DNA of 64,000 nucleotides from Mytilus edulis (taxonomy: Eukaryota), in the NCBI RefSeq assembly GCF_963676685.1, contig NC_092344.1:48732001-48796000 (forward strand), read 5' to 3'. Under the pieces are notes generated by a model, which saw only the letters and a list, made by a program, of their open reading frames with translations, was not told the DNA's origin and searched no databases. This document shows, one piece after another, positions 21,281 through 60,681 of this stretch; the stretch's first letter is position 1, and each line of letters opens with the position of its first letter. A program made the translations under genes and the position numbers.

Positions 21281-22372
21281 TTAGATCAGACTGTCTGTCA
21301 TTTTGGCGACATGAATTTTTCCGCAGTCCTCATTTTTGCCTTTACCACTTCCAATTAATAAATATCCTTCTGTGTCAAAGCATACACAATATGGCCTGGT
21401 TATGCCCAAGTCTTTGAAAATTAATTGCAACCCAAGTAGATCTCCTTTCAAGTTTATAACATGTATAGCATCGTTTCCCCTGTCTGCAACTACAACGTTA
21501 TCACTTGCCGTAATAGTAAATCCCTCTGGTTGAAATGTTTCTAAATCGTCTTGCCCGTCGTAGGTAAACCTTAAGCGACCATGTCTATCCACAGCTATTA
21601 TTCTACCATTGTGGTCAGTGTCAAAACGATCAATAACATAGACAACATTTCTAGAATCAGTGAGAATGCGTGCTGCATAACTGAACAATTTATTTCCTTT
21701 TTTGTCAACTTCTAATGTTACTCTCCGCTGATAATCACTACCGAAAATTATTACCTGTCTGACCGAAAAATCCTGGGCTGGATGAGGTGGTCCTTGTTCT
21801 CGTAATCCAACTAATACTTCCTTGTCTTTGTTTATATGTATCGCCAAAGGCAGCATCGGAAAAGTGTCTAAAACAGTTTTTACTTCACCCGCGGGGGATA
21901 AAATTTGTATTTTGTGGTCACGATGTTCAATCAAAAGTATTTCACCGTCTTTTTTTATTGCAAAGTCAAATATTTTTCTCTTCAACGTCTGTAATATCTT
22001 TATTGATGATTCTAAACGTTTCCCTTTCACAAATTGATGTTTGTCAGACGTTTTCTGATTAAATTTAAAGTATAACAAATCGTCATCCGAACAAAGTAAA
22101 GTATTAACAGCAGGTAGAGAAGTTGTGTATGATTTGAAAACGGATGAAATAACTACAGACGATACTGGTGATGATTTGCTGATATCCTGAATAGACACAA
22201 TGTCATGATCTTGTGCAGATTGAAGTCCTTGATGGACACTTTCTTTACAGGAGTTACACATACGAACATTGCAATCTTCACATTTCCACAGTATTTCTTG
22301 ACCTTTGCAAAAATAGCATGAAACTGGCACTTGTGCTTTTCTTATACTTGTGGATTTCCCTGAAGTCGCCAT
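21281..22372 (-). CDS. B-box zinc finger plus NHL-like beta-propeller protein (TRIM-like, no RING or coiled coil), copy 1
   Basis: Intronless 363-aa ORF. B-box CYFC...CEDC...CNSC...H...H, followed by NHL-like blades (FQPEGFTITASDNVVVADRGN, RPYCVCFDTEGYLLIG). Confidence 0.85.
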   Translation of the reverse strand: MATSGKSTSIRKAQVPVSCYFCKGQEILWKCEDCNVRMCNSCKESVHQGLQSAQDHDIVSIQDISKSSPVSSVVISSVFKSYTTSLPAVNTLLCSDDDLLYFKFNQKTSDKHQFVKGKRLESSIKILQTLKRKIFDFAIKKDGEILLIEHRDHKIQILSPAGEVKTVLDTFPMLPLAIHINKDKEVLVGLREQGPPHPAQDFSVRQVIIFGSDYQRRVTLEVDKKGNKLFSYAARILTDSRNVVYVIDRFDTDHNGRIIAVDRHGRLRFTYDGQDDLETFQPEGFTITASDNVVVADRGNDAIHVINLKGDLLGLQLIFKDLGITRPYCVCFDTEGYLLIGSGKGKNEDCGKIHVAKMTDSLI

Positions 22373-23231
22373 TTTTACAGTAAAATAAACATCAAAACGT
22401 CACGTGTTTCACTTTCTACTTCGTTCTAAGTAGGTATAAAAAAGTTGAATACTATAGAAATGTGTAACCTTAACCCATTTAAAGTTTGTCTTGTCATGAT
22501 CTAAACATGAAGAAAAGTATTTGTATAAAGTTTAAAGATAAGTACATTATAGAATATAAAGACTACATTTTAAATCGTATTTTTTTGCTTTTACACAACA
22601 AGGTATTTTTTTAAAGAATTGCTATTGTCATATTTGAAATAAACTTATTTCATAAACGAAGGAGCTGTATTATATGATGCTCAAAATGCATTTTAAAACC
22701 AACAATTGTGTTGCATTTATGTTCTTTTTTTAACGATGCGATAGAGCACTCACTCAATTTTACTACGCCTATGGAAATGGACGGCAGACGGTTTAACTAC
22801 TTGCTTAACTATCAAATAGTATGATTTCCTTTTAACAGGGAAAGTCCGCGATTTTTTGCTCTAATCTAAATATGTTCATCTTAACATAAAAAACACATTA
22901 ACAAAGTTTTAAATTTATATTCCTTCTAATAACGGAGAAAATCAAGTATTTGTTACTTTTTGGTTCACGTACATTTTGTACGTGAATGGGTTGTGACGTT
23001 TTAATCCGATTTGTTGAATCCTGGTAAAAAACAAAATCTGTTTTAATTGCTTATCGAAATTTAACGTACGTCAAAGTGCACAGATGGTCGTTGGTCGTCG
23101 TTAATAACCACAATATAAGAATGAAAGAAAATGAATATCGTGTACCATTTTGTATTGATTGAATAAAACTTTCTATATGAAATTATCTAAATAATAATAC
23201 AACTCATAAATTATTGTTGAGATTTTTTCAT

Positions 23232-33261: not shown

Positions 33262-33269
33262 TATATAAA
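33262..33269 (+). promoter_or_regulatory. TATA box of the pleiotrophin-domain gene (copy 2)
   Basis: TATATAAA 65 bp upstream of ATG 33327. Confidence 0.6.
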
Positions 33270-33326: not shown

Positions 33327-33411
33327 ATGAAAAACGTGTTTGTTATTTTTGTCGTCGTCCTGGTAGCTACAGCCGCTGCTAAAAAGGGATGGAAACTCCG
33401 ACAGCGACAAC
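33327..33411 (+). CDS. Pleiotrophin/midkine-like four-domain secreted protein, copy 2, exon 1 (signal peptide)
   Basis: MKNVFVIFVVVLVATAAAKKGWKLRQRQ followed by a phase-1 GTAAGT donor. Confidence 0.8.
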
Positions 33412-34279
33412 GTAAGTCTAAAGTTTAACAAGCATTTTATTACTTTGAGTGTAAGCATTAAATTTTCAACTACTTTTACAAGCATTTAAATTAGTTTAAC
33501 AACTATTCAAATTATTATAACTAGCATTTCTATTATTTAATAAGCATTTTTATTAGTTTATCAAGGATTTCAATTAGTTTAACAAGTATTCAAATTACTA
33601 TAACTAGCATTTTTATAAGTTTAACAAGCATTTTAATTACCAAAATTACTACATAGTGCACCAGATGGTCAGTCCAGGGAAATAAGCAAGACTGTCTTTC
33701 ATAAAAAATTGTAAAATAACTCAAAATCAAAAGCAGCTGACCTTGAAAATATATAAAATAAAATACTATCAATAAAGAAAATATTCTGATTTGATTTTAC
33801 AAATGAACAATAAAATAGCACGTTATAAATTTGTAGCGTCCGGGGCGCTTTTCAGTTTTAACGCTCAAACCAAAGGCTTATAAAACACGAATACACCAGA
33901 CGCTGTATGACTAAAATGGGGAATACAAAACATTGTTTCTTGTATCTTAAGTCAACATTGCTGGAGGGATTGAGGATATGTGTTTCTTAATAGTTTCGAA
34001 ATTATTCATTAACGGAAAATTCCAGAAAAGTAGGTTATATATTATGTCAGTACTGAAAAACTCCAATAAGAACTCTTTCGATGCCGAAAAAAGAAAATAT
34101 GTAGTTAAATGTATGTTATATCCGTTTTTTGCCTGATATATTAAGATCTTGTTAGAATTATTATAAAGGATAAACATTGAACATATAATGTGTCAAAATA
34201 TTAGTAATTGAACAAAATAGGACTTGTTTACTTAAAGTTTTTATTTGAAACCTTGAAAATGAATAAACCAACTTTTCAG

Positions 34280-34543
34280 AATGCAAATATGATAAAAGTG
34301 CATGGAGTGACTGTGACACGAAAACAAATACCGTCAGCCGAGTTCTGACTCTAAAATCCGGCAAGGAAGGATGCCAACAGACACAGAACCAAACCATAAC
34401 ATGTGATAGGTTTGAAAGACTACAAGCATGGAAAATAAAAAAGGCGGAAAATAGAAGAGAATTGCAGGAAAAGAAACATCAAAGAAAAGAACGACAACAA
34501 GAGATGAAAGAGAATAAACAGCTTGTGAAAGAGCAACTTAAAA
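34280..34543 (+). CDS. Pleiotrophin/midkine-like protein, copy 2, exon 2 (domain 1 plus basic tail)
   Basis: TTTTCAG acceptor, CKYDKSAWSDCDTKTNTVSRVLTLKSGKEGCQQTQNQTITC, GTAAGA donor; 264 nt. Confidence 0.85.
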
Positions 34544-35053
34544 GTAAGAAAATATATGAGAATGATTGAAAAATATTGTCTTACACATAAAATATTGTTA
34601 TTTACTAATATAATCAGAATTTTTGTCGATTTTGATGCAGGTTGTGATTGCTTAAACAATCGCTTCCTAATAAATTAAGCTTTAAAATTCATTTCGGTAA
34701 GAGTACCGTCCGTGTACATTTACGCCAAACATTTTTCATTTTAAAATGAAAAATAAATTTTCAAATTGCTCTTCAAATCTTAAAGGTAGTTGGTTTGAAA
34801 AATGTAACAAAAACCTATAGAAATCACTTTCGAAAAACCATTTTCTCTATGAGATTTGAAATTTGTTATTTTCATGAAATTATATTTTTGATTTAACGAA
34901 GATATTGAAACAAATAACAATAACTTTCTGTTAAAAATGATTTTATTTTGTCAAAAGTTTAAAATTATTAAAACATTTATATTTGCTTGCTTTAGAAAAC
35001 AAAACATATTTCAATCTCATTCTTAAAAGCAAATATTGAAAATACTGACCTTT

Positions 35054-35270
35054 AGCATTTTTCAATTTAGTTTACAATATTGACAAATGGAAAATGATCT
35101 AACGTGGAGTATTTTTCAATTTGACTTACAATATTGAAAAATGAAAAATGCTCAAGCGTGGAGCATTTTTCAATTTGTCTTCAAATATTGAAAAATGAAA
35201 AATGCTCCAACGTGGAGCATTTTTCAATTTGACGTTTAATATTGAAAAATGAAAAATGCTCCAATTTTTC
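35054..35270. repeat. Array of ~54-bp palindromic tandem repeats in the left TIR
   Basis: Units contain TGAAAAATGCTCCA-ACG-TGGAGCATTTTTCA. Confidence 0.85.
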
Positions 35271-37834
35271 AATTTTCATTTTACTGTGCAATATTCAAAT
35301 TTGAAAAATGTTCATTATTTAAATGTCTAATAATGGGAACGAAATGTAATTTGTTTCAATGTAGGCGTTTTAAATGTTTAAATTGTTGTCCCTTTTTATT
35401 AAATGTTTTACTATTTCCGTTTTTTTTTGTCTTGTTTTAAGCGCAATATGTCTTGAAGATCTTTTTAAGGTGTGTTTGTGTGTGTGTGTGTGTGTGTGAA
35501 CTATGTGTGGTATCAACAAATTCCGAACAAGAATGGTACACTGACAAGTACGATAATGACCACAAAGAATTATTCTTTCTTTTTATCTATATACAATGTA
35601 TATAGCTGTCATTGTAGCTACGTGTTTATATCTATCTTTCGATCTATCAATCTGTCATTCATTGTATATATCTTGCTATCTGTCTATCTATCTGACTTTT
35701 GTTTTTCTTTGTCTTTTCTTTCCGTAAGTCGTTTTTATTCTGAAAATGGAATTACTAGGCGATGCGGAGTAGACGAAGTTGCATTGGACCATATCGTGGC
35801 TGAATGTGTCAAACATGTTAGAAAAGAAGAGAAAATATTAGAATATTAGATATTGTCCATGTCAGTTTCTGTACATGCTCAAGGAGCAGGGTTCGCGATT
35901 CGAAAGGGATGGGGAGGGATGGGTGTAGATGTTGAATTATTCTGATCACTGTGCTAGTATATGTTTTCAATTTTGTATTTTTCTACATTGTACAGCGTTT
36001 CCTAATTTTGAATCTGTTTAATACAAACTTGTTTTTCCCAACTGATATTCACAATTTCATTCGCAGAATTTCAAATAAGCAATCATCTTATAAAAGAAAA
36101 TATGAAATTAACTTGCATGCATGTATGTGTGGTAAATGTATATTTCGAAGAATGAAAGACTTCTTATATTTGCTTTTACCGAAAACAAAATGTAGCAAAG
36201 AATATATAATAATTATGTGAATAGTATTTCAACAAACATGAAACAGTTCCCCCGAGGTTCTGTATTATGTACATTCTATTATCATGTCTTTAATATGATT
36301 TTACATCTTCAATATGTGAAAGCAAAACGAGTATTATAGGACAAATATGTCGACACAAAAAAGGGGTCTCAGTCAGTGACAATCTTCTTTTGAAATACAA
36401 AAAGGAAAAAATAACAGATCGACACAGATCGACACAAATGATCGAATTTCAAACCGTATGCATCATGTACATGGAACAAATACTAGTAGTTACATTTATC
36501 AAGCAAAGGAATCAACGTGTGTGAAGCTAGAGTTGGTAAAGTATTAGCGACAGTTAACCCTCGCTACCATCATTTACGACAGCAGCAGTGGTTGATTCAG
36601 AATTTTTCATAAGGGGTGGCACTGACTGACCTTAAGGGGGTCCAGTCATGCTTTGGCGATTTCCTATATAATCAACCAAATTTTCCCCACAAAAGGGTGG
36701 GGGAACCAACGGAAATACATAGTGTTTCAACTTCTGCAATGATGACAGCGTATAATGCACATGGTCGACGCTTCCACAAAGCCAAAGTAAGGGACAACAT
36801 CAAAAGTTCAATGTAGGATAATAAAAAAATACTTAATTTACATAGTTTTTTCACTGATTCCTTATTCTTAACTTAATTTGTGAAATATTGATTATAAAAA
36901 ACGGACATATGTAAAATCGATTTTGGATAAACAAAACTCGCAGCAATTTCACACCCCTCCCCCTCTATCAGAAACATCGAGCACGCTTGTATCTGTACTA
37001 TATGTTTAGCATTTTTTATAACTTGTTTCTTTGTTTGTATACGCCCGTCTAAAACGGGACATATTATGATATACCGTTGTCGGTCCGTCGTCCACACTTC
37101 GGACAATTAATAAAAAACGCTTCCACCAACTTTTATGGAACTTTATCGAATTGTTTATATCTATTGACGTAAGATCCCTTTCGATTTTTATAAAATTCAA
37201 ATTTTTCGTTTCCATGTTATGACTTTTTTTCCTTAAAAAGGGGGGAGTTTTCCAGTTTTCGGAGACTAATTCTAAAATGCTGCCATCAACTTATGAGACT
37301 TTGGTGAATTGTTTAAATCTATTGACGTATGCTCTGATTTTTATAAATTTCAGATTTTACGTTTCCGTGTCATGAATTTTTATGCTTAAAAAAGGGGGGA
37401 TTTTCCAGTTTTCGGACAATCATTCATAAACACTTAAACAAAATTTTATGACAGTTTAGTGAACTGTTTAAATATGTTGACTTAAGCTACCTTTCAATTT
37501 TTTTTTAAATTTCAGATTTTACTTTTTTTTTTTTTAGTTATGAATTTTTATATTGAAAAAAGGGGATTTTTTCCAGTTTTTTGGACAATAACTCAAACAC
37601 GCTTTTACCAACTTTTATGAAACATTTACATTTTTGGAGTTATGGAGTTTTTATTCATAAAAAAATGAGGCTTTTTTCCAGTTTTTCGGATAATAAATCA
37701 CAAATGCTTTCAGCATTAAATGATTAGACTATGGTGACTAGTTAATATATCTAATAATTAAACTAAGTACCCTTTTGATTTTTATATAATTTCTGATTTG
37801 ATGTTGTACAGTTTTGGGGATTTTTTCTTCTGAC

Positions 37835-38100
37835 AAAATGTCGGAAATGGTCAAGGAAATTTTGCATGACGAAATTGAAGAAATGGTGGTAGACACAAAA
37901 GAGAGTACTGACAGTATAACATGGAAAGACGGAACAAGAATTGTGGAGCTTTTAAGTCTGGCACTGAATAACTGCAAAAACGCTGCACGGCCCAGCGGAA
38001 TCTGCTCGGCGTAGAGAATGAAATATTTCAAGGAATTGGGATCTATCTTACTATTCGTTGCTTAAACTGTAACATGCTGGAAAACAAAATTCGGAACAAA
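37835..38100 (+). pseudogene. Frameshifted fragment resembling the N-terminal Zn-binding region of Mutator-like transposases
   Basis: WKDGTRIVELLSLALNNCK, then in a shifted frame VENEIFQGIGIYLTIRCLNC. This resembles, from memory, the GRRIVEL...CxxC...E..GLG..L.I.CxxC pattern. No DDE core was seen. Confidence 0.4.
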
Positions 38101-41100
38101 ACGACCTGCAATAGCTAATTATGAGTATTGGTAGCTGCTTAACGTACAGCGGCAAATATTTTTTGCACATTTATGACATCCAAATGTTATTTTAATGAAA
38201 CTTAAAGAAATGAGAAAACGTATGAACCCGTAATTAATGAGAAAAAATTAACAAAATCTATGGCGCGTAGGGTAGCCGAATCTGGTCTGGTGTTGAAATC
38301 CATACACAAAAGTCATTACTACGGCGTGTTGTACAGCTGTGCAATATTTTTCATGACGAGAACAGTTATTTTCATTTATTGATAATGAATTCGAAGTAAA
38401 TAATACTATCTTGAATTCTTTTCTTGTTTAGCATTGGCAGCCTCCAAATTTTACGGAGAATTGTCATTGTAAGGCCAAATTTAACATACTATCAATGAAA
38501 TAACAAAACCGACTGCATGCGCGAGACCCTCATTGGTGGACAAGGTCGTATAACACCTCTATTCGCAAATAGAATAATAAGTAAAGAGAGTGTCTCATCC
38601 TATTCTGGACTTAAAATTGGTACATAAAAAAGCCGATTTTAATTGATATTTTAAAAACATATAATATTATATGTGTATGAAGAAAAACTGTCAATAAAAA
38701 TCCGTTAAAAAGATTTCAAAAAATATATTGGTGTCGTTTTTGGTTTGAATTTAAGCAAAATATTACCAATAGATGCAGCATTGTCACACGTTAGTTTGTT
38801 TAATTGGTTGTACATGTATTCTTTTTGTATATGAAACTGGATGTAATAGACCAAAACAAGAAAACGCCTTGTACATGTATTCTTATTTGTATAAGCATGT
38901 CCCTATTGTACATTTTGTACTTCAATGTATTGAGAGATAAAAATTGAAGTATCGGCAAATGTACACTAACTGCAGACAGACAGATCAGAAAGTGTACACA
39001 CGTTAAAACTCGTCGTATAGTTAGACGATCAGACAGACGAACAAAGTGTTTTCAATATAGCTCTTCTTCTAGACAAACAAGTATGCAAATATTCATACGT
39101 ATACGCCGTAAAAAAATGTTATGTAACTTATCTATTGATAAAGACATCATTCAATATCATTCTCTTATACCGGCTGCAGTACTTCCTATGAAATATTATA
39201 TTACAACTTCATTTTCGGTCGATTGATGCAATAATGGCATGAGTTAAATTGCACAAAACAGCTCTTATTATAAAACAAGAAGTACTGCTCATAATTTAAA
39301 TTTGAAAGATAATTATCTTTTGAGTGTAAAAAAAAATAAAATCAAAGTACGTCGGGACCTTTTAAAGTTGACGATACGGTATCGGTTTTGTCATTGTTGA
39401 CGGTTATATGGTATGATCGCCTCACTTAATTTATAGTTGGTTCACATTTTGTCATGTCAATAATGTTGTCTATCATCCTACAGTACATCAAGCAATTTAG
39501 AACTAATGTCGGACGGAGATGTACCTTTATACTTCTAGCAGATCTACATCTGACAAAGCAATCTGCTAGAATCCTTCATTTATATTAAGTATCAACGCTC
39601 TGAAAAACACCTGCATAAACTTGACAGCAAACTCGTGTACGGTGGGAATGATTACACGACGTTGTTGCGATTAAAACTTAATTTAACGTAATTTAGCGCC
39701 ATACTGACAGACGTCGTAAAAAATAAAGATGTATGGCTTTTATTGAAAAAACAAGCACATGGACCCCAATTGTTTTCTTTTGCAATCAATCAAGTACTGT
39801 TTCAAGAACACTCCACCAAAATTTCAGGAAAAAAACAACGATCAAATTTTTTCTGCACTTCCGAAAAGACGCAAAAGTATGGTCAATTCTTTATTTCGGA
39901 TATAGCAATCTAAATCCGGAACATGATGATTTGGTTTAACCTTAAACTTGTTTCAGTACATTTGTATGTTGATGTCATGGATCAAGGGAATATTTTACAA
40001 AAACCCGGTTAAGTTAATATGACTTTTCGTTCAAAAGTATTGTTACTTTCTTTAAAAGTCATAATTTATTAAATTTCAGGGATTTTCTTCCAAATATGCA
40101 AATTTCGAACCAAATTATCTCTAAAAGTAGGTCATGAAGGTACTTTTTTCTTTGCATATTTAAAAAGTACACATTGAAATTGACCTTCTATCAAAATTTT
40201 AAGAAAAAATCAACGAGGGATCTCTACTGTATCGTATGCCCTTAAAGCATAAAGACAAGAGGAGTACCATGCGCTTACAGCGGAGCTCTTTATTTATTTA
40301 TTTGAAAAGTCTTTTCAAAAGAGGGACGAAAGATACCAAAGGGACAGTAAAACTCATAAATCTAAAATAAACTGACAACGCCATGGCTAAAAATGAAGAA
40401 AACAAACAAACAAACAAACAAACAAACAATAGTACACATGGCACAACATAGAAAACTAAAGAATAAACAACACGAACCCCACCAAAAACTAGGGTTGATC
40501 TCAGGTGCTTCGAACGGGTAAGCAGATCCTACTTCACATGTGGCTACCGTCGTGTTGCCAATGTGATAACAAATCCGGTAAATAGTCTAATTCGGTAGGT
40601 CACATTCATGAAAGGGAAGGGGATTGTAGTTACGACGTAAGGAACATATCTGATATCATTTGCGAAACGATTCAACTGTTTTTATAATATGCTTTTTATC
40701 ACTGTTCAATGTTAAGGGGATGGTTGTGCACATAAAACGAGTTTAATCACTAAGAGTCCTATATATGCGCCGTAAAACTAATTTTTCTCGAATGAATTGA
40801 ATTGTTTTTAAATTTTTCTTTTTGGATCTCTTATAGATTGTTGTGCGGTAATGGTTTTCATCAATGTTGAAGACTGTACTATGAATTATACTTGTTCACT
40901 TCATCATCATTTAATGTCTGGTGGAAAAAATTGTTTCTCTCGCAATCATACCACATCTTTTTTTTGTGAAATTATGAATAAAACAAAGTTTATCACTAGT
41001 ATTCGTCAGTTTAGTTACAGAGCATTCCATTCACGAATTGAGTAAATGAATAAATGGAGAGCGCAGCGTTATTTATTTTCATGTGCCATACATGCTATAC

Positions 41101-44100
41101 ATGTATGAATTTTTATAAATGTACATGTATCAATTGGTGATGTTTTTTGTACTTGCTACCTGGGAAACTAAGAAAAAATAAGATAGCACAGTTTCTTCGG
41201 TATTGATTATGTTTATTGATTACGTTACGACCAATAACAATAATAACAACAGTTGAAATTACTGAACAATAAGTGATATATATTTCACGATTATTAAAAA
41301 ATGTATTCTGACACGATGAAAGCAGGAAACGTACGGTATCAACAATTCAAGACAAGAACCAGTTGCTCATTTTGATCAGTAGGAAAGGTAGAGAAACAAG
41401 GAGCATGTTTTATGCCCAAGTCACACTAGACCACTATTGCACATCCCGTAGGTGAGGTCCCGGTACGAGCAGGATGAAAGTTTGGATTTTCATTGTTTTC
41501 ACGATGCTACTACGATCCCGCTACGGGTCACGTTCTCATCACGCCTATTCTGAGTCTTCAATACGATAATCACGATTTATTACGTTAATCACGTTTTCAT
41601 AACGACAATACATGCACGATTTATTCGATTGCAACACGATCTTAACACACCTTTTCTGCGATTATAGACCGCTCTTACATCGACCGGTCTAAGTCCTTTC
41701 CACTTTCAAAACGTAATCTGACTACGCTCTCGTCATTATCATCAACATCATATTGCATATACATACTGTTTATAAATACTGTTCCCTTTAATTCTTCTAA
41801 TTGTCATTTAAAATACGTAGAATTCTCGCAAACAACACAGACATACCACCAAAATATACCAGAACTAGTGGGCGTGATGGTAGAGATAGAGATAGAATCA
41901 GAGGAGCCTCTGATACGAATTCTGATCCAGTAGACATATATGCATGTCAGATCAACCAATCCAACCTGAGTCACAACGCGATGCTGATCCATCGAGATCA
42001 AATGACGATATGTTATTGAACAATAGAGGAAATGATATAGATGTGTCAAACATGGTTGTGCTTATCAAACCTTGACCAACGTTAAGTTTTTGATATTTGG
42101 TCTTTTTTTCTAACACTATATGCAATATGTAATCTTTGTTTGGTGTATGGAAATATTTAATGATGTGCATGTCAGTCTGACAGGTTTTATTTGGCCTTGA
42201 CCTCATTTTCACTGTTCATTGCACAGTATTCAGTTTTTTAGTTTTGTTCTGATTTTCTTAAACTATATGAAATAGGTTAACTTTACTTGCTGTATGGAAT
42301 TGTAAGTTGTACACTTCTGCCTGCCATGGTTCAGATACTTGACCTTAGTTTCGTGGTTCATGTGTTTAGTTTTCTCGGTTAAGTCTGTTTCTTAGAAACT
42401 ATTAGCATGGGTCATTTATACTTAGTGATTTATTGTAAGGTGTACATGTATTTCTTGTTTTGTTTATATGACCTTGTCCTAATTTTCTTTGACCATGTTA
42501 AGTTTATGTGATAGTTGTAGTAAAGCTTTATATTTAGGACTATCAACATAGAGGGTGGGCAGGACCTTTTTCAGGACGTCAGGATCGGGTGGTTTTAAGC
42601 TTGTGATTTCGGGATTAACCCTTTCGGGACCCGGGATTTTTTTTTTCATTCAGGACCTCGGGATTTCATGTTTTTAAGTCCAGGATTTTGGATCAACATA
42701 ATATCAATGATTAGTAAAGAAGGCGAGACATTTCAGCGTGTGCACTCTTTTCGTAATTTGAGAAATTTTAAATAATTTGAACATTTATCGAAATTGCCTC
42801 TTTGTTAATACTATTATATTTTTTGTAGCTCGTCCGCTCCCCTTTTATATTCGTTATGTAAACAGAAAGTCACAACTGTTCTGTTGTTTTACAGGGATCA
42901 CGAAACTTTTATGCTGATCCATATCAGGCTGATAATTCTGAGCATACAATCCATCTTGATCAAAATGAATTATGCAAGTAGCCCCAGAAGTGGGATATAG
43001 AGAGGGCTGCTATTGAGGTTACAAAAAGGGATGGTCGGATATAGGATTATTAAAATGTGGGTAATGAAATCAAGGGGACACCAAAGGTGGGATCTGGAGA
43101 ACAAACAAAAAAGATGAATTTAGGAAAAGGCGCACACCGAGTCACTCCAACCTCATTCACGTGAATGAAATGAAATCCCATCTGTAATGTCAGAATAAGA
43201 TTTTAGTGTTGTTTACTTTTTTTTAGGGAGAGGACGGGCGGGCATCATAGGAAGATCTCCCATCTCTGACTCAAAATATGGATAATTTTATGTCAAGGGT
43301 TTTATGATTCTCCCTGACAGCTTCAGACATAATAATTTTGTATCTTCTATTTTTTTAAATAGACAATCCAATTGAGAAATAATGAATGGAAATGGGGAAT
43401 GTGTCAAAGAGATAATAACCCGACCATATATATAGAACAGACAACAGCAGAAGGTCACCAATAGGTTTTTAATGCAGCGAGAAACTGCCGCACCCAGAGG
43501 CGTCCTTCAGCTTGACCCTAAACAAATATATATATACATGTACTAGTTCAGTGATAATGGACGCCATACTAAACAAATTAAAAACTAAAAACCTAATTTA
43601 AAAATAATACAAGACTAACAGAGGCCAGAGGCTCCTGACTTGGAACAGGCGCAAAATAAGTGGGGTTAAACATGTTTATGAGATTTCAACCCTCCCCTGA
43701 TACCTCTGACCAATGTAGATAAGTAAACGCATAACCATACACCCAGTAAAATTCTGTCTAAAAGAAGTCCGAGTCCGATGTCAGAAGAGGTAAAAAAGAA
43801 AATAAACAAAATGATAATAACACATAAATAACAACAGACTACTAGAAGTTACTGACATGTCTGTTGAACAGGTTTTTTTTTTGTCTTCTATAATGTTCCT
43901 TGTTGTCGTTAGTTGATGTGATTCATAAGTGTTTCTCGTTCTGTATTTAGATTATATCGTTGTTTTTCCCGCTTGAATCGTTTTAAACTAGTCATTTTGG
44001 GAACAATTTATAGCTTATTGTTTTATGTGAACCATGACTCTGTGTTGAAGACCGTACTTTGACCTATAAAGGTTTTTATTTTAAAAATTGTGACTTAGAA

Positions 44101-45549
44101 GGCAAAGTGTCTCATTGGCACTCATACCACATCTTCTTATATCTAGAGAAATGTAAACTAACTTCACATTTGAAGTTAATTTTTAGCTAAAATGCCACCG
44201 CACATTCATTCCAAATAAAAGAAAATCTGTCTCAAAATGAACAAACTTTAAGTAATCAGCAATATCAGTCTTGACAACATCAAACATATTTTGACTATAA
44301 ATTGACACAAAATGTACCAAATAAACCATACTATAAAAATAAAAGACCACAGGAACAATTATACACCTACATTTTCAAAACTTGTCTCCAAAAGACAGTC
44401 GTATCTAATTCCACCGAGCACTGACTCAAATGTCTGCTTCATTCCTGATTAGTTTTCCCAAAATAATGTATTTCAGTAAAAAACAGAAAAATCGCTGTAA
44501 AATTCAACATCAACCTCGCGGGACCAACACTTAGCATTAGTAATTCTGATTGAGATTCGGAGATGTAAACCACAGCTTGTTCTAGTTGTAAACAGAGACG
44601 ACGGATGCCAAATGTTAAAGCACTATTGGTATTAAAATAGCTAAGTAATACTAACCCCCCAAAAAAAAACAGTGAACAAATTATTTAATTCATTTTATCT
44701 ACTTAAGAAAGGGAGCATTCAATGACTTCCAAAATGAGCTGTATTTAGAAGGAAAATGGCATATTAATCAACCTTATACAGAGAGACTGGGAACAGAACA
44801 GCTTTCCTAGGTGTTGTTTTTATCTTTACATATTTTCTAGGTTGTCAACGAGGGTATCACCAAATCCGTAGCAATTGTATGAAAGTACGAAATCTTATTT
44901 TACAATATTTTTCATTTACTATTTATTGATGAATAGCTCTCAGCTTTGGTGAAGCTATTCTGTCGTTGAGGGTTTTATAGGGCATATTGTAATTCCTTTC
45001 CGCTATGCTAAATCCTTTAATGGCAATCACTGAACCGTGTTGTTACGAGCAGGGTTTTATATGCCTTGATATGTGCGTGTCCGTATTGCTCAGATGTTAT
45101 CTTAAATGTATATTAACTTTTTAAAGAAGTTTACAAATGTTTTGCAACGGTGCAAATACTAAACTTTGGAGTAAAAATAAATATCTCTATCAATGAATTA
45201 AACAAACCAATATCCATTTGATTTAACAGATATAACGAGAATATGTAGTTAACCTGAATGTGAATAACAAAATAGGGAAATATAAAGTTAAGGGTTTTAA
45301 GCAAGGGAAATAACAATAATTTTTTGCATAATAATCCTACGACACATCACAAAATTTTGCTGGTGCGTTGTTGTTCTCCTATCTTTTCGGGGTAAGGTAA
45401 AAAATGTGTATACACGGGTTCACACATACACATATGTGTATTATATTTAAAGCATAAAAACAAAACTTTGATTAAACAAATTGAAAATCCTCAACACAAA
45501 AAAAAAACATTTTCATTTTTGAGAAAAAAAAATTAAAGATGAAAATGCA

Positions 45550-45810
45550 ACATTTTTCATTTTTCAATATTTCAAAGCAAATTGAAAAATGCTCCACATT
45601 GGAGCATTTTTCATTTTTCAATTTTTAAAGGCAAATTGAAAAATGCTCCACGTTGGAGCATTTTCCATTTTTTGATTTTTGAAGGTAAATTGAAAAATGC
45701 TCCACGTTGGAGCATTTTTCATTTTTCAATTTTTAAAGGCAAATTGAAAAATGCTCCACGTTTTAGCATTTTTCATTTTTCAATATTTGATGGCAAATTG
45801 AAAAATGCTT
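45550..45810. repeat. Array of 54-bp palindromic tandem repeats in the right TIR
   Basis: About 4.5 units of GGCAAATTGAAAAATGCTCCACGTTGGAGCATTTTTCATTTTTCAATTTTTAAA. Confidence 0.9.
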
Positions 45811-47166
45811 AAGGTTAGCAATTTCAATATTTTGTCTTTAAGAAGGAGATTGAAATTTGTTTCTTTTCTAAAACAATCAAATTCAAATGTTTTAATTAAT
45901 TCAAACTGTTGATAAGATGAAATCTTTTTAAGACAAACTTATCATTACTTTTAATATTATCCTCGTGAAATTAAATAATGTAATCTCATGAAAATAACAA
46001 ATTTCAATTCTCATAACGAAAATGATTTTTCAGAAGTGACTTCAACAGATGTTTGTTACATTTATCAAACCAATTAATTTTAAAATTTGTAGGGTATTTT
46101 CAAAATCTATTTGTTCAGCTTAAAATGAAAAATGTTTGGCGTAAATATACACGGTCTGAGTACGTATCGTATTTATAGACAGACAAATTTAGAATATATT
46201 GTAAAAATGAGTAATTAAAAATATTTATGTATTTTTTTTCAAGTCATCTTATCTTTAGATAACCCAATTTCTACTTAATTGAAGCCAATAAAAAATATAT
46301 AACTGTATATCAAACAACATAAGTAATACAGATTTTATTCTTCTAACTATATATCCCTCTTAAGTTTAAAACGATTCTCTGATACTAAGAATATAATTGA
46401 ACGATTTTTTTTATCTTTATAATTATCTAAATCGGTATGTACATGTATTAAATAAAACTTCGTTATTCAAAAACGTACCATCAAACGCTACTTCTAGGAT
46501 CAGTCTAGTCAGTTCTAAATGGGATATATTTTTCTTTAAATTTGGGCAAGGTTTTCCATGATTTTGGGAACAAAATTTGAGGTAAAAATAGGGGGACACC
46601 GACTTCGTTTTGTCACTATAGCAATCTCAATTTCGTGTTTTATGAAAAAATCTCGCCCTTCATTTCGGTAGACCTACGTCTCAGAATCTTCTACCTACTG
46701 AATAAAAGATAATTTCTTCTTGGCCTGAAAAAAGAATTAAACTTTTGCCACTGGCTGACAAACAAAAAACAACCAATCATATTGAAATAAACAGCATAGC
46801 ATATAAATGATGATTGTTTCCTGTATACGATACAGTTGTCTATTGTATAAATAAATTCTGTTTGATAAAAGGATTTGTCTCTCTTTGATCAGTTTATAGG
46901 TCAATAAAAAAGTGGTGCAAAAAATATTTCTGATTTTGGATTTTCTGGATTTACATTAATCAGGGATGTTCACTCAAAACTTAACATTGTTAGAGCGGTG
47001 ATGAATGAGAACAATCGGGAACCTTTAGATATCAGTATTTTATTTCTGTAAACGAATGAATGTTTTGTTTGGTTTGCATTCGAATTGGTCCATGCATGGA
47101 GTCAATATACGTGATTTATTAATTTGTAGTATCTTTAATAATATTGCGATCATGTTTTTTATAAAG

Positions 47167-47421
47167 GATGTCGTTATGAACACAGTGATTGGAGTGAGTG
47201 CGATCAAGCAACAAATACAGTAACCCGAAATTTTACTTTGAGTGAAGGCGAACAGGGTTGTGAACAATCACACACTATCACCATAACTTGTGACAAACTA
47301 AATAGAATACAGGCATGGAAAGCAAAGAAAAGGGACCGTAAACAGAAAAGAATAGACGAAAAATTGCAAATGAAGCAAGAGAGAAAAGAGAAAAGAAAGC
47401 TTGAAAAAGAACAGAGACTAA
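47167..47421 (+). CDS. Pleiotrophin/midkine-like protein, copy 2, exon 3 (domain 2 plus basic tail)
   Basis: CRYEHSDWSECDQATNTVTRNFTLSEGEQGCEQSHTITITC; open frame of 255 nt; GTATGT donor. Confidence 0.85.
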
Positions 47422-47750
47422 GTATGTATTGATTTTTAAATTTAATTTACTACTGTTGTTTATTCGGTATTATCTATCTATGATGGTATACAACCAGCTT
47501 TTTTATCAAACAAATAATTAAAGTTAAAATGTACTTGGAAATGTCATATTCGGTCAGGAGCGTACCAGATTAAATTAATTTGATGAGCGCATGGAAAGTA
47601 CACCCTTTTTGCCAGTTTTACTTGTTTTTTTATATTTGTTGTTTGTTTTTTTAACACAAATATATACTATTATGCTCAAACATTGATATTCAAACTTCTT
47701 TGTAAAATATGTTAATTCTTTGTATTTATTCTCATCACAATTTATTTCAG

Positions 47751-48017
47751 AATGCAAATATGACAAGGAAGACTGGAGTGAATGTGATAACACAACAAAC
47801 ACAGTAACCCGAGTTATGACATTAAGGGATGGAGAAGAAGAAGAATGCGAACCAATAATAAATGTCATCATTTCATGTTCAAAGTTTGAGCGTATTCAAC
47901 AGTGGAAAGCAAGAAAAATGGAGCGCAAGAACGAAAAGAAGGAGAATAAAATGTTTATTAGAGAACAGAAAAATATGTGGAAAGAAAATAAAAAGATAGT
48001 GAAGGAACAGCGTAGAC
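47751..48017 (+). CDS. Pleiotrophin/midkine-like protein, copy 2, exon 4 (domain 3 plus basic tail)
   Basis: TTTCAG acceptor, CKYDKEDWSECDNTTNTVTRVMTLRDGEEEECEPIINVIISC, GTAAGT donor; 267 nt. Confidence 0.85.
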
Positions 48018-48642
48018 GTAAGTAAATAAATGAAACGAACCAAACAATTAAACAACAACATAACAAAATTATAATTACAAAAAGGTGAAACTTTCAGTAA
48101 CAATTAAGATCTCGTAAACAAAAACATTAACGGATTCCTGGATTACAAAATACACATGCTAATGATTGAAAGGTTAATTTTATAGACTGTACAATGAAAT
48201 CAATGCAATTTAGCGAACAAGATACGTCTACAGATCAAAAACAGTCTTTTACAGTGGAAAGATGTCTATACAATATGTCAAGCTCTTAATCACCTCCTTG
48301 TTTACAATATGATGTTTTAGTCATGTCTGGTTATTCGTTCAAGTAAATAGAATACTTTTTAATTTAAAAAAAAGTATTTTGAAATCAACCTTGCTTGCTT
48401 AAAGGGTATCCCATTTAATTGATTAACCGTGTTGTTATAATTCACGAACAAAAACTTCTCATACCGAATTTAAAAGATTTCAGAATAATTCTTAATCAAC
48501 AACACTTTCTCTTATTTTTTGGTTTCCGTTGCATACACGGATCGACTCTACATATTCAAAGACAGGGCTTAAAGAACTGCCTGTGTATATTTTTATATTA
48601 TATTTTATGAATATAGGTTTATATTGACATGTTTATTTTCAG

Positions 48643-48872
48643 TCGGATGCAATTTTGATGTAACCTTTAGTGAATGTGATCCTACAACCAACATGGTTAC
48701 AAAATCGTACATACCAACAACAGATGATGATGATTCATGTGAAAACAGGTCATTTGAATATTCATGTGATTTGCATGAAAGATTAATGGAAAAGAAGAGA
48801 AAACGTCAAGACAAAAGAGTCAACAGAAAAATAAATAGGAAGGAATTTAGACAGCAGAGGCTTCTTATCTAA
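48643..48872 (+). CDS. Pleiotrophin/midkine-like protein, copy 2, exon 5 (divergent domain 4, basic tail, stop)
   Basis: CNFDVTFSECDPTTNMVTKSYIPTTDDDDSCENRSFEYSC...TAA. AATAAA at 49117-49122. Spliced CDS is 1101 nt (366 aa). Confidence 0.85.
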
Positions 48873-50628
48873 ACCAAAGACTTTAGAACAATGATCAAGA
48901 AGAAATCCACTTTTCATCATGTACAATGTATTAAGACTGAGAAAAAAGTTAGTTCAACCCTGCGTCAAATTGTTTTCTATACATATGAAAGTGACAGAGA
49001 ACATGTGACTTGGTAGTTTGGTGGTTTACTAATATCAATTGTGAAAATAGGCTGATATTGAAATCTAGATAATTTGCAATCTAAATATAATACATTTTTT
49101 AAACTAAACTTCTTTTAATAAATATTGTACAAGTCTTCTTTGACTGTTATTTTTCTATCGCAGTCTTTGGAATCATACGCAATACTTGTGTTGCTGAAGT
49201 CTTGTATTAGAAGTTGATGATGGGATTTCCGGATCTTGTTTTATGGTAGGCTTTTTATTTTTGTTAAATCGACCATCGATATATACATAAGTCCTTTCTA
49301 CCTTGAACTCGCACATAATTCGAAATAAGATACTTTAAAAGATGATACAATTTTAATGAATCAACAATTGCATGATATTATTGAAAACAACGAGTGCCTA
49401 CCAGATCTCCTAGATTATATACTTATATAACAGCTGCTACAAATATTATAAAATCAATAAATAAGAAAATTGAAAAAGAAATGTATTATTTATCATAACT
49501 TTCATATTCTTTTCACATATTTTCTTGTAAAAGATACCAATAGATATTTTCTACTTTTGTAACCCAAAGGTTTAATATAAGTTAAAAGACCAAAACAAAA
49601 TACCTCATGGACCACTAACACAAATGTGGATCATATATCTGATATTACACAACATATTTTCACGGTCTATGATGTTTCGGTTTTGTTTTGTTTCCTTGTA
49701 TTATTTCTTCTAAATCGCTTTATGAGATTTAAACATTTAAACTACTGTTGCTAAAATTATTTTTTTAGATACTAGTATGATAGACTGGTCTGTTATGTTA
49801 CAACTTCCTGATAATGACTATACACTGAATGTGGATTCGCATTACGGGTGATACATGCAGGCCCGGAAACACTTGCGCACCCGGTTTTAGTTCATGCGGT
49901 TCCCTCATTTTTTTGTGTGTTTACCTTCATTTGTATCTTTTTGTTTGGTTTATAAGATTTGAACACCGGTTAACAACTGTGGCCTCGAAATGATCTCTAA
50001 GCAGTAACATCATTGATGTTAAGAAATTTGCTTCTTTCCAAAAGATTTTACCTAAGTCGCTTCCTAGAGGCAAGATTAGTTTTATTTAACTAATAGACAT
50101 AGAGAGAAAAATCCATGCTGAAGCGATTACCTGGATCAACCTTCAACGCCCAAAACCGAATATAGTATGAAAAGCCAAGGATGTATAAGAAACGAAACAT
50201 TTGAAGAGCAATATGAACAGAATGGTCATAAACAATAGCCAAATCCATCTAAAGCTTAATGAGGGAGTTGAAACCTTTATAATTTCTTAATCTATTAACG
50301 GACAATTTAAGAAAGATTTGCTTTAAATCATGTCAGTGCCGAAGTTCTGACTTCCTAGCTGATGATACTCTTGGGACTTATAGTCTACCAGCAGCGGTAG
50401 AGACATTCCGAATATTGTGTCCGTATCAGCAGGCCAAAGACTATTCTTCTACAAATTTGTTCAAGAGGCATGTAAAGTAAGGTCAGAGTGAATAGATTAC
50501 TCGGTCAATCAGAAATTAAATTCAAACAAAACTCTGTCTGCGAAACATCACACATCAATGTCTAACATTTTTGGTTTACTTGTTATAGCGATTAACAATA
50601 ATATTCCTAATTTTTAATCGGTTTTTAA

Positions 50629-52748: not shown

Positions 52749-55253
52749 ATGGTGTCTTTTATTTTTTATATGACAACATATTTTTTTGCATATGTTTCTT
52801 GCCATCCATGTTTGATTCAAGACAACAGAGGAGATTGTTCTTCACGAGGGCTTATAAAAGTTCCACAGGATTTACCTCGGAATCTTACTACACTTGACTT
52901 AAAACGAAATTTGATAGGTACATTATCACATGGCGATTTTCAATTTTATGGAAGATTGATAATATTGATTTTAGATAAGAACAAGATTTCCGTTCTGCAA
53001 TCAGATTCTTTTAAAGGACTAAAACATTTGAAACATTTGTCAATGGCTGACAATTTGCTTGATCTTAATACATCATATGTCTCTGAAATATTCGGACCTC
53101 TGAAATCACTAGATAGGCTTTACATTTCAAGAAATATGCAAGTAGGAACAGATTTGCCAGTTTATTATCCCTTTTTCGGATATTGTCGTAAACTTACAAT
53201 TCTAGAAATGGATCTTGCTCGAAAGCCAGTGTGGAATAAATGTGGATTATCAAAACTGAAACAGCTACGAACTCTATCTTTTAACTTCTGCTTTTTAGAT
53301 AAAATGACAAATAGGACCTTCGCTTTTATGCCACCATCAATAGAAAATGTTTACTTCGCTGGCTGTAAAGTTCGTGAGTTGGCTGAACTAAACTTTCTTA
53401 AACCTTTTCATTCGTTGAAGATTCTTCGCCTATTCCATGTTTGCATAGACATTGAGTCAGCACTGAAGATCGTATATCCTTTTATTAAAATGGAAGAGTT
53501 AAACTTTACAGAAGTCAATCCTGGCTATTGTGACGGACTTATTAGAGCTCCTTATGCAGTTATAATAACTCCTGAAATGACAAAATACTTGCGAAAAGTA
53601 TGTTTAAGAAAATTAATTTTGATAAGAAATGGTATTGTAGATTTCAAGCCAAATTCTTTACTTTCTTACAATCATCCTGAATGTTTTGTTACAATCATTT
53701 TTTCTGGAGACCGATTTTCAATGACAAATGGATTTAAAACATTGGAACTGACGAAGTTCATACTGCAGTTATCAAGTCTTATAACTTTCAATTATTCCGG
53801 GATTCTCAGTATTTCAACTGACGAAATGAATTCAGGTTTAACGGACGATACGGAAAATGCAGAAAATCTGAATCATTTGGTCGCAAATGATAGGAAATCG
53901 GGTGTTCAGATAACGTTCCCGTTCCCTCAATCACTGCAAGTACTTGTTTTGTCGAAATTTGCTGGAGTTCAAGGAACTACTCCACACACAATATACTTAT
54001 CAAATATAAGCTATTTGCGAGTTCTAGATTTATCCTATTTCAAGATGAAGTATTTTCCAAATATTGTGTTCAATGGAACAAACTACTTGGAATATGTTGA
54101 TCTTTCAGGTATCGACTCAACTCTGTACTCAGGAAGGAAGAATATTCCTTTGTTTAAGGAATCAAAGACTTTGATATTAAAACATTCAAGGCTTGATTTG
54201 ACACTTAGCAGAAGTAAGAAAATATTTAGTCTTGTGCCAACAGTAAAAAGATTGGATATATCATATAATCACTTATGGTTTCTGCCAATTGACGCATTCA
54301 ACTCGAACAAACACTTACGAAATCTTGATATGGGATTCAACTTATTTTCTGAAGTACCAATAGCGTTGCACACATTGCCAAACCTTGAAGTTCTTATTCT
54401 AAAACATAATAATCTTCAAACCATCAATAAGACGTTTCAGCAATTTTTCGATGTGAGAAATGAGCGAATTGGGGCTTCATTCCAACTGAAACTTTCTGGA
54501 AATGTTTTTAGATGTAGTTGTGAGAATTCTGACTTCGTGTTATGGATTTCCAAAACAAGGATAAAACTTGATAAACCTGCGAGAAACTATACGTGCCAGT
54601 TAGAAAATGGAACATATACTAATACAAAAACAGCGGCAGAAAATTTCCATGAATTGTATGGTCATTGTGCAAATGAAATGTGGCTCCGAGTAGGTATATG
54701 TTTACTTGTGATATTTATTACATTTACAACTCCTATTGCAGTCATAGTTAATTTCAGGTGGCGAATAGCATATTGGGTATATCGGGTTTTTAAAAGAGTT
54801 GTTGAGAATGATTTAAGGTCTAAATTCAAATACGATATTTACTTGTCATATTCAGATGATTGCTTCGATTGGGTTAAAGAAATGTTAATACCGAAAATTG
54901 AGAACACATGGAATATGAAAATGTGTATAGAGGATCGGGATATTTTGGCTGGAATTATCCGATCTGATGCCATTTCACAGTCTATTCATGAAAGTAAAAA
55001 TATAGTATTTGTCATTTCCAAATCATTCACCGAAAAAACATGGGGAAAGTTTGAGATTCAAAGAGCCAAGTATGAAAAGTACACTGGACATTTGCAGCGT
55101 ATTATTGTCATTACAAGAAACGTCCAAGTAGAAAACTTCCCAATCGAACTCGATTGTATTCTCGATGATGTCTTTCTTGTGAATTGGTCAGACCAGGAAA
55201 TTGAAAATGGATGGGACAAGTTGAGAATGGCGTTGTTTTCCGACTATAGTTAA
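52749..55253 (+). CDS. Toll-like receptor, single-cysteine-cluster type, intronless
   Basis: 834-aa ORF with signal peptide, LRRNT (C...DCSSRGLIKVP), LRRs, LRRCT (NVFRCSC...C...C), TM helix and TIR domain (KYDIYLSYS, CIEDRDILAG, WDKLRMAL). Confidence 0.95.
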   Translation: MVSFIFYMTTYFFAYVSCHPCLIQDNRGDCSSRGLIKVPQDLPRNLTTLDLKRNLIGTLSHGDFQFYGRLIILILDKNKISVLQSDSFKGLKHLKHLSMADNLLDLNTSYVSEIFGPLKSLDRLYISRNMQVGTDLPVYYPFFGYCRKLTILEMDLARKPVWNKCGLSKLKQLRTLSFNFCFLDKMTNRTFAFMPPSIENVYFAGCKVRELAELNFLKPFHSLKILRLFHVCIDIESALKIVYPFIKMEELNFTEVNPGYCDGLIRAPYAVIITPEMTKYLRKVCLRKLILIRNGIVDFKPNSLLSYNHPECFVTIIFSGDRFSMTNGFKTLELTKFILQLSSLITFNYSGILSISTDEMNSGLTDDTENAENLNHLVANDRKSGVQITFPFPQSLQVLVLSKFAGVQGTTPHTIYLSNISYLRVLDLSYFKMKYFPNIVFNGTNYLEYVDLSGIDSTLYSGRKNIPLFKESKTLILKHSRLDLTLSRSKKIFSLVPTVKRLDISYNHLWFLPIDAFNSNKHLRNLDMGFNLFSEVPIALHTLPNLEVLILKHNNLQTINKTFQQFFDVRNERIGASFQLKLSGNVFRCSCENSDFVLWISKTRIKLDKPARNYTCQLENGTYTNTKTAAENFHELYGHCANEMWLRVGICLLVIFITFTTPIAVIVNFRWRIAYWVYRVFKRVVENDLRSKFKYDIYLSYSDDCFDWVKEMLIPKIENTWNMKMCIEDRDILAGIIRSDAISQSIHESKNIVFVISKSFTEKTWGKFEIQRAKYEKYTGHLQRIIVITRNVQVENFPIELDCILDDVFLVNWSDQEIENGWDKLRMALFSDYS

Positions 55254-58200: not shown

Positions 58201-60681
58201 CATTTGTTTTTCATGTTTACAATAAGTTTAGTAAGTATTATACAATTCTTATGTTTTCCGTTAATCTACTTGTCAGTAGGTGTTAATCCTCTTCTGTTGA
58301 ATTGTATAATGGTATGCAAAGACCTGCATGTAAACATAGATCAGCACCATTTTCTGTATTTGACATTTGACTCAAATTCGAGGTTTATCTCGAAGTATGA
58401 CTGGAATTGCAACTCAAACTTTAACTTTAACTCGAACTGGAACTGAGAGTAGAAGATGAATTCGAATTATAGATCGAAATCAAACTCGATATCAAAACAA
58501 ATGGTAAGTCGCAGTCCTCATGGATGTCTGAGTTTTGATATCCCGTTTGGTATGTTTCACGTCCTTTGTATTCAATATCAAAACTGGGTTGGAAAATATC
58601 ATCATAATATTAACTCTAAAATATAAATGAGATGTTGTCCTATAAAAGGTTAAATACATTTTTATAAACAAACTGAAGGATCAAAAAACTGTGTGGAGTC
58701 AACGGTGACTCCGATAATTGTTATCGTATCTTAAGATGTTACATTTTCTTAAAGTCTTCAGAATGGAGCATATTTCCCTGATATATTTTTTGTGCATTAT
58801 AAGATTACAATAATAATCACTTAAATGAAAGACAACGTATATATTTTTTAGTTTAATGGCCAAAAGCATCTATTTTGTACATGTGTTCGAGTTGTGTATG
58901 AATTCACAGAAGACATAAAAAAAATATAATTTCAAATTGATGGGGACCAGTTAATTAACAACAAACAACAAATTAAAAAATTAACAAATATAAATCAATA
59001 CGAGCAGTCATTTAAATATCACGTTTAGACCGACTGAGACATTTGCATTTATTTTTTTATTGATAATCAATACCGTTATGATTCCCATTGTTATGGTATC
59101 TCATTACCCGACCCGTTTCCGTTGAAACAGTAGATATATCCAACTTCCGTTTCATGTATATACGTTATGTACTAAGTCCGAAATATGACAGTTTTTCCTC
59201 GTTCTTTCATTTGATAAACATGATAAAGGACTTTCAGTTTCGAAGTTCCCTTGCGTTCCGTATTTTTTCTATTTGACTTTTAATGTTTGCAACTATATAT
59301 AAAAAAAAGTAAAAGTAACGATTCACTTCTCTTTCATTTTCCGGGTGCAACGTTTGGAGCAGGATTTGCCTACCCTTCCGGAGCATATGATATCACCCCA
59401 TTTTGTGTTTGGGTTCGTGTTGCTTAATCTTTAGATTTCTATGTTGTGTCGTGTGATTTTGTTTGTCTGTTTGTCTTTTTCTTTTTTCTTTTTTGCCATT
59501 GCGTTGTCAGTTTATATTCGATGTATGAGTTTGGATGTCCCTCTGGTATCATCCGCCCCTCTTTGGGTCATTGTTATATGATGACTTACATTTTCTCTCA
59601 ATACTTGTTTAGATAATTCGAAGGTGAACAATAACTGTTTCAATTAGATCATTAGGTCATATTCTAAATTTTGATTTTGGCTTATTTTTCACTTATTTCC
59701 GAAAAACGTATAAGATATCGACACATTATGTTTACTAAATATTTAGTTGCGACATGTCGTAACATAATTTTGATTGCAAGGGTACGTTGATCGTAAAAGG
59801 GAGGTTTCGCCCCTCTTGTATGTAAAAATACGCGTATGGTGATATAACTCATTAACCAAATATAATGAAGATTTATGGTCTTTTTGATTTGAGGTCCTTG
59901 GTTTGTGACCTTGAAATTAATCTCAAGGTCATAGCTTAATTTGACATTCTAGATTTTGACCTTTGCTTTTACCTCATATGTATACATGATAAAGCCATGA
60001 GACTTTTTGCAATAGGTTTCAACCCTTTTAACCTTGAAAAATACAACCTGAAGTGACCTTGTTTAAACCCGAAGTAGCTATTTTTGTTCTTTATTAATAT
60101 AAAAGTATATAGAACCAGATATTTTTGGAATCAGTGTCAAGTAAATATTCAAATAGTATCGGAAGTAGCATTTTTTCAAACCGGAAGTAACAAATTAAAT
60201 CCCTTATTTAAAAAATATTGTATAGAAACCATATATTTTGGGAATCAGCGTACAATAAGCTATCATTTGACGATTGCTGTGACATTTTAAACCTATTTTT
60301 ACTACTTTCATATTAAAATACATGGTTTTTGGTGGAAAGACCTTTTAATTATCTATGATTTTGTATTTAGCCAAGTTGTATAGATGTAATTAAACAAACT
60401 ACTTATACTACGTACAGAATATAAACACACGATTGCGTACGTTAATACAATATCTATGCACCCGTCATATCCTGCAGGGCTAGAACGGATGCTACACAAT
60501 GAATGAGGGAACTTGAGGAAATAATATTGAACATTTTACTACAATTCTTGCAAACCTTATCCCCTAGAATCTCCAATTTTATTCCCATTTCAGGGTAACT
60601 ATAACTCTGAATGTAATCATTATGCCATACTCGTTTTTTAATATTTAATCATTTTCAAATTTCAATTTACAACCGAACATA

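Follow-up and report, generated by a model that had tools for sequence, protein, structure and literature searches.

Does the genome of Mytilus edulis conceal a gene for a secreted relative of midkine and pleiotrophin whose architecture has not been described? This question is raised by a 64,000-nucleotide (nt) stretch of contig NC_092344.1 (assembly GCF_963676685.1, forward-strand positions 48,732,001 to 48,796,000; hereafter the window), in which a model given only the letters and a list of their open reading frames had proposed a hidden five-exon gene with four midkine/pleiotrophin C-like domains (hereafter the original prediction). The gene in question (33327-48872), here called copy B, is one of three tandem copies, together with copy A (5895-10001) and copy 0, which lies upstream of the window. 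Our computational analysis indicates, with a probability of about 0.85, that copy B is an intact and annotated M. edulis gene of the midkine/pleiotrophin (PTN_MK_C) superfamily, and we regard its gene model, module architecture and family assignment, taken by themselves, as very secure. Within a known family, copy B is an uncharacterised variant specific to its lineage; its subfamily has so far turned up mostly in mussels, and the only unusual feature of its product is the arrangement of acidic cores and basic, predicted helices.

The coding sequence of copy B is distributed over five exons on the forward strand (33327-33411, 34280-34543, 47167-47421, 47751-48017 and 48643-48872), which join into 1101 nt comprising 366 codons from the ATG at 33327 and a TAA stop codon at 48870-48872. 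All four introns are of the GT-AG type and in phase 1, with the donors gtaagt, gtaaga, gtatgt and gtaagt in order. Exon 1 contains the start codon, a signal-like peptide and a short basic stretch before its phase-1 donor; the predicted signal peptide (residues 1-18, 33327-33380) has a hydrophobic core, small residues at -3/-1 and an A-A-A end, as judged by sequence only. Each of the other exons carries one four-Cys core followed by a tail, namely module 1 (core 34282-34404, tail 34405-34542), module 2 (core 47169-47291, tail 47292-47420), module 3 (core 47753-47878, tail 47879-48016) and the divergent module 4 (core 48648-48767, tail 48768-48869). The Cys spacings are x9/x19/x9 in modules 1 and 2, x9/x20/x9 in module 3 and x8/x20/x8 in module 4, and the tails behind the Cys cores are 34-46 amino acids (aa) long, with 63-74% of their residues being K/R/D/E/Q. 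The original prediction had thus described this gene accurately, with its five exons, GT-AG phase-1 introns, 366-aa product, N-terminal signal peptide, Cys spacings and K/R/E/Q-rich tail after each module. A six-frame scan of the window for the four-Cys pattern placed the modules on the forward strand at 34282, 47169, 47753 and 48648 and returned a parallel module set at 6855, 8293, 8883 and 9777. Every module also contains one N-x-S/T sequon (residues 65, 138, 215 and 325 of copy B), located at a different position in each. The module pattern and the exon structure are far beyond chance: three of the exon peptides match Pfam PTN_MK_C on their own and the joined model equals a RefSeq protein.

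That RefSeq protein is XP_071124190.1, to which the spliced model of copy B is identical over all 366 residues, and the gene is therefore not hidden as had been claimed. Its RefSeq name, 'golgin subfamily A member 6-like protein 26 [Mytilus edulis]', is misleading and masks a family assignment that is clear from Pfam, PDB and fold searches. Proteins of 366 aa, two per species, are likewise annotated in M. trossulus, M. galloprovincialis and M. californianus, which together with M. edulis makes four Mytilus species. Older M. galloprovincialis models bear the automatic UniProt name 'Pleiotrophin/Midkine C-terminal domain-containing protein', and paralogues are named 'midkine-like' or 'PTN'.

We next assessed family membership by searching the exon peptides against Pfam one by one. 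Modules 1-3 matched PTN_MK_C (PF01091; gathering score 25.3 bits) with 36.1 (E = 8.3e-9), 44.4 and 44.0 bits, respectively (E from 8e-9 to 2e-11), and module 4, searched as the exon 5 peptide alone, had no PTN_MK_C match; rows for AMA-1, DUF6471 and PEHE in the module-4 exon were below their own cut-offs and were disregarded. An alignment of module 4 and its relatives nevertheless matched the module 1-3 profile with an hhalign probability of 97.2% (E = 2.9e-11) and the Cys residues in register. None of the exon peptides matched PTN_MK_N (PF05196) with E values allowed up to 10, nor did the four-module M. galloprovincialis protein P0151 or the paralogue P0018 with a limit of 0.01, and TSP_1 (PF00090) produced no row at E up to 10 in the exon peptides. 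When one exon peptide was compared with PDB by phmmer, zebrafish midkines and pleiotrophin were the best matches at marginal E values (0.01-0.15), and the alignment left the central loop two residues shorter than in the zebrafish proteins. A profile of 32 module sequences retrieved only pleiotrophin and midkine chains from PDB (E = 1.1e-10 to 6.8e-8), and the ESM Atlas gave only sub-0.9 leads, all from PTN/MK or TSP1 families. All modules have the four Cys residues of the PTN/MK C-domain, with a central loop of x19-20 versus x21 in midkine and pleiotrophin, and their disulfides are assigned from this spacing. Modules 1-3 can thus be placed with the PTN/MK C-domain, as originally suggested, on the basis of Pfam, the PDB profile search and Foldseek, while the claim that the fourth domain belongs with the others is sustained by hhalign and not by Pfam.

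Structure prediction pointed in the same direction. AlphaFold2 (AF2) modelled the exon-3 unit (84 aa) with a mean predicted local distance difference test score (pLDDT) of 97, comprising strands at residues 2-5, 17-26 and 34-40 and an uninterrupted helix at 41-83 (43 residues), in support of the helical charged tails of the original prediction. In a Foldseek search against PDB, ranks 1-4 for this unit were midkine-a, the PTN C-domain, PTN and midkine-b, all with a probability of 1.00, and its superposition on the PTN C-domain 8voi_B had a root-mean-square deviation of 1.1 A over 45 columns (TMt 0.70); complement and other thrombospondin repeat (TSR) structures ranked below the midkine matches (E = 0.2-1.6). 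The exon-5 unit was modelled with a pLDDT of 90.9, the same topology and a helix at 41-74. Its top two Foldseek matches were also midkines, at weak E values (0.46-0.70), and its AF2 input alignment included module 1-3 sequences; for both reasons, the fold assignment of module 4 draws mainly on the profile comparison. According to these models, every module adopts a fold of the midkine C-domain type, a small TSR-like sheet with three strands and two disulfides, and each sheet is predicted to run straight into a strongly basic stretch of 34-46 residues that forms a single helix.

We then examined how charge is distributed along the protein. The cores of modules 1-4 have net charges of +2, -5, -7 and -7, with isoelectric points (pI) of 4.1-4.5 for modules 2-4, and the tails carry +7, +11, +11 and +9, respectively. 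Across 471 modules of the retrieved proteins, the median core charge was -4 before long charged tails and +4 before short linkers, counts that are not independent given the many close orthologues in the set. Aligned with midkine, modules 1-3 keep just one of the human heparin-binding residues, the Arg of T-V-[ST]-R, where module 4 has Lys. Neither by net charge nor by alignment did the copy B cores show the basic heparin-binding clusters of the C-domain surface. The original prediction implied a heparin-binding core, and this cannot be transferred to copy B, whose modules 2-4 have acidic cores.

To place copy B in its genomic setting, we compared the tandem copies. Positions 1-13600 of the window align to 26837-53855 with 85-97% identity, a second aligned pair links 21241-22373 with 60644-61786, and a third unit lies upstream of the window. 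The tandem duplication unit is ~27 kb long and holds the midkine-like gene, a Toll-like receptor (TLR) gene and a gene for a B-box protein. Copy 0 (XP_071124165.1, contig C1 48707001-48711097) is intact, lies about 22 kb upstream of the window and differs from copy B at 6 residues. The ratio of nonsynonymous to synonymous substitution (dN/dS) between copies B and 0 is 0.12 at a dS of 0.057, which indicates, from sequence divergence, that these two intact tandem copies evolve under purifying selection. The exons of copy A (5895-5979, 6853-7134, 8291-8545, 8881-9147 and 9772-10001, forward strand), which the original prediction did not mention, include an in-frame TAG at 8434-8436 in exon 3, where copies B and 0 have CAG. 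In copy A, tail 1 has also undergone length changes that keep the frame and dN/dS is elevated (0.35-0.39), and RefSeq annotates here only a 182-aa downstream open reading frame from 8494 (P0214) that lacks a signal peptide; copy A is probably a young pseudogene. The second intron of copy B (34544-47166) is 12,623 nt long because of an 11.4-kb insertion (~34706-46152) with inverted ends (34710-35316 versus 46154-45544, 82% identity), and a short duplicated target sequence (GTAC or AGTAC) stands on both sides of it. The insertion is absent from copies A and 0; in copy A, intron 2 measures 1,156 nt and the empty site is at ~7285-7296.

What the protein does can be proposed only tentatively. Secretion would be expected, because the N-terminus is signal-like and sixteen Cys residues require an oxidising compartment, and the mature form would be ~42 kDa with a pI of 9.5. 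The four-module protein may bind polyanions, such as sulfated glycans or microbial surfaces, in a multivalent manner; the multivalency would come from the four units, and the binding charge would have shifted to the helical tails from the beta core, basic in midkine but acidic in modules 2-4. Given this core/tail charge pattern, polyanion binding, if kept, would be located in the helical tails. As read from the sequence, we put this mechanism somewhat short of even odds. Both Drosophila relatives, Miple1 and Miple2, bind heparin even though the human heparin-binding residues are not fully conserved in them (PMC4224452), and midkine and pleiotrophin are reported to be bactericidal, as cited in PMC4224452 (its ref. 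78). That the gene shares a tandemly duplicated cassette with a TLR gene may point, though weakly, to a role in immunity or in the extracellular matrix. A further-reaching version, in which the protein would be a new functional kind of midkine/pleiotrophin, with charge moved to the helices, acidic cores and a multivalent humoral immune effector function (opsonin or antimicrobial, possibly cleaved into units) co-amplified with the TLR gene, seems improbable.

Other explanations differ in what they make of the tails. If a proprotein convertase cut at the basic residues just before each next module, the product would be a polyprotein that releases four module-plus-helix peptides of ~9-10 kDa, for example antimicrobial or cytokine-like ones. 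The tail ends beside the first Cys of the next core are all basic in M. edulis (K-R, L-K and R-R-L-G), as they are in the 52%-identical relative P0205 (R-K-R, R-L-R and R-R-L-G) and in P0002 (R-L-R and K-R-L-G). R-x-K-R-like motifs also occur within tails 2 and 4, and the single units fold confidently alone in AF2. However, the candidate cleavage sites lie at or within predicted continuous helices, one of the three M. edulis junctions (L-K before module 3) is not dibasic, and basic residues are so common in the tails that cleavage-like motifs are expected from composition. We therefore consider processing into peptides unlikely. Alternatively, the tails could be inert single alpha-helix spacers of ~5-7 nm between protein-binding modules, like beads on rigid rods, serving for instance to cluster a receptor. 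ER/K single alpha-helices are at least 30 residues long, rich in E/K/R with dense i/i+4 E-K pairs, near-neutral and monomeric, and they likewise place long charged predicted helices between globular domains. The mussel tails, composed of 63-74% charged or Gln residues and modelled as unbroken helices, resemble them in this respect, and tail 2 has 7 opposite-charge i/i+4 pairs. Across the four tails, however, these pairs number 1-7, with only 1-3 in tails 1, 3 and 4; the net charge is large and positive rather than ~zero as in balanced ER/K helices, and the setting is extracellular. A coiled coil would be another option for such tails, and the two-copy complex prediction of the exon-3 unit gave no answer (score 0.00), which counts neither way. 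Rigid spacers thus appear distinctly unlikely.

The remaining two alternatives question the gene itself. Were the RefSeq name correct, copy B would encode an intracellular golgin-like coiled-coil protein. The name is automatic, probably triggered by the K/E/Q-rich tails, and against it stand the hydrophobic signal-like N-terminus, 16 Cys residues in four disulfide-module patterns, a PDB profile search that yields PTN and midkine only, and the lack of any golgin, GRIP or other coiled-coil Pfam family in the exon peptides or P0151. Signal-like peptide, Cys modules, Pfam and PDB results together refute a golgin identity at the sequence level, and we see practically no chance for it. Copy B could also be a decaying duplicate without a functional product, like copy A with its premature stop and its dN/dS of 0.35-0.39, and the 11.4-kb insertion in its intron 2 might be taken as a sign of this. 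Its 366-codon frame is nevertheless intact, its splice sites are canonical, its dN/dS against the intact copy 0 is low and the insertion is wholly intronic, all of which makes decay very unlikely.

Several points weigh against our reading of copy B as an intact four-module gene of this family with charge-segregated units. The RefSeq XP_ records are predictions, and older models from M. galloprovincialis, M. edulis and M. coruscus (including P0151, P0201 and P0202) drop one tail. In these models, internal phase-1 GT donors (at 47880-47895 in exon 4, and in the exon 3 tail) remove tail 3 or tail 2 exactly, which could reflect alternative splicing or a prediction artefact. AF2 often yields confident long helices for charged low-complexity sequence, so the tail helices stay a prediction, and the tail net charge of +7 to +11 is unlike that of near-neutral classic ER/K helices. 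The core-charge statistics are inflated because many of the 471 modules come from orthologues, and a neighbourhood within a segmental duplication is weak evidence for an immune role. The splicing of copy B is itself predicted and is based on the identical RefSeq model, the low dN/dS and short transcript-like contigs of related species. These include a 1,204-nt Logan contig with a 355-aa four-module relative (P0205) and a 1,133-nt Logan contig with a 324-aa three-module relative, both too short to be anything but intron-free and transcript-like, given that in M. edulis the gene takes up no less than 4.1 kb of genomic sequence. The source 'merc', which we take to be a marine metatranscriptome catalogue, lists a two-module relative (P0009) with an ERR-run accession.

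How far does copy B depart from known members of the family? In vertebrates, midkine and pleiotrophin have been studied in depth as cytokines that bind heparin and act against bacteria, and their tails are short, Lys-rich and disordered. Their C-domain (PF01091; 1mkc, 2lut, 2luu, 2n6f and 8voi) provides the best sequence and fold matches and shares with the mussel modules the four-Cys, three-stranded TSR-like sheet, the C-[KR]-Y...W-[SG]-x-C-D...T...R..T-L motif, a basic tail after the domain and secretion, which is predicted for the mussel protein. In contrast to the one N-domain and one C-domain of midkine and pleiotrophin, the mussel protein has four C-type modules and no PTN_MK_N match; the cores of modules 2-4 are acidic where the midkine/pleiotrophin C-domain is basic, and the tails of 34-46 residues are predicted to be helical. 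To our knowledge, invertebrate relatives are barely known beyond Drosophila Miple. Miple1 and Miple2 are secreted, tandemly arranged, heparin-binding members of the family (PMC4224452, PMC4287103), which the mussel protein resembles as an invertebrate member in tandem arrangement that is presumably secreted. The Mytilus paralogues XP_063402709.1 (M. trossulus), CAG2256557.1 (M. edulis), the C10 locus and the C5 gene have a signal peptide, PTN_MK_C and a helical charged tail in common with copy B. They also possess the divergent type of terminal module with its basic tail, but they have two or three modules instead of four, and the first linker of the C10 type is short and without a helix. On C5 the gene (reverse strand) combines one internal-type and one terminal-type module; the C10 cluster contains helix-tailed 'midkine-like' and compact basic modules, and one C10 match has stop codons.

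A search of the module profile against 1.84 billion representative proteins retrieved 212 with E values of 0.001 or below, many of them matched in 3-9 stretches. Predicted proteins of Gigantopelta (XP_041351382.1), Mya (XP_052810032.1), Potamilus (KAK3578451.1) and Solemya (KAL5009509.1) contain 5-9 tandem PTN_MK_C modules and are secreted and uncharacterised. They differ from the mussel protein in their short Lys-rich linkers without long helices, basic cores (median +4) and another C-terminal Cys domain. PTN_MK_C has thus expanded in molluscs in two styles, one with 5-9 compact basic modules and the other, found mainly in mussels, with acidic cores and long basic helices. The literature on midkine/pleiotrophin or PF01091 in molluscs, Mytilus and bivalves yielded no paper on any mollusc member, and a 'golgin' match in a Mytilus RNA-seq paper was Golgin A4, a different protein. 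The original claim of an undescribed architecture therefore holds insofar as no characterising paper was found, but predicted multi-module mollusc proteins are already in the databases. With gene and domain family both on record, the locus opens no new category of biology, and what it provides is a lead of modest value, not a hidden gene. Its 9-10 kDa units, predicted to fold confidently alone, offer an easy system for asking which part, core or tail, binds glycans or microbes in this family.

The origin of the modules was addressed with a tree of 28 modules, built from short sequences and with moderate support. One group unites the terminal modules of proteins with two, three and four modules (84/94), and another the internal modules of those with three and four (93/86), indicating that module 4 represents a separate and older terminal type. 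A further pair (95/86) consists of the second modules of the Mytilus protein and the 52%-identical relative, and a four-module state older than the split from that relative would fit this pairing. One module per phase-1 exon, together with the tree, fits exon duplication from a two-module ancestor, and the internal modules may have arisen in this way.

Around the coding exons of copy B, a TATA-like box (33262-33269) lies 65 nt 5' of the ATG and a candidate poly(A) signal, AATAAA (49117-49122), lies 245 nt past the stop codon, both on the forward strand and both weak evidence in a genome of 30% GC; an equivalent AATAAA is found 237 nt past the stop codon in copy A, and the 500 nt upstream of copies A and B are 93% identical. 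The TLR gene (52749-55253, forward strand) lies 3.9 kb downstream of copy B and encodes, in a single exon, 834 aa with LRR_8 and TIR domains, and the neighbouring B-box protein is encoded on the reverse strand (60682-61794). In the copy A unit, the alignment of the TLR region stops after its first ~1.2 kb and a retroelement with tyrosine-recombinase open reading frames (13989-16890) follows, and this unit as a whole looks degraded.

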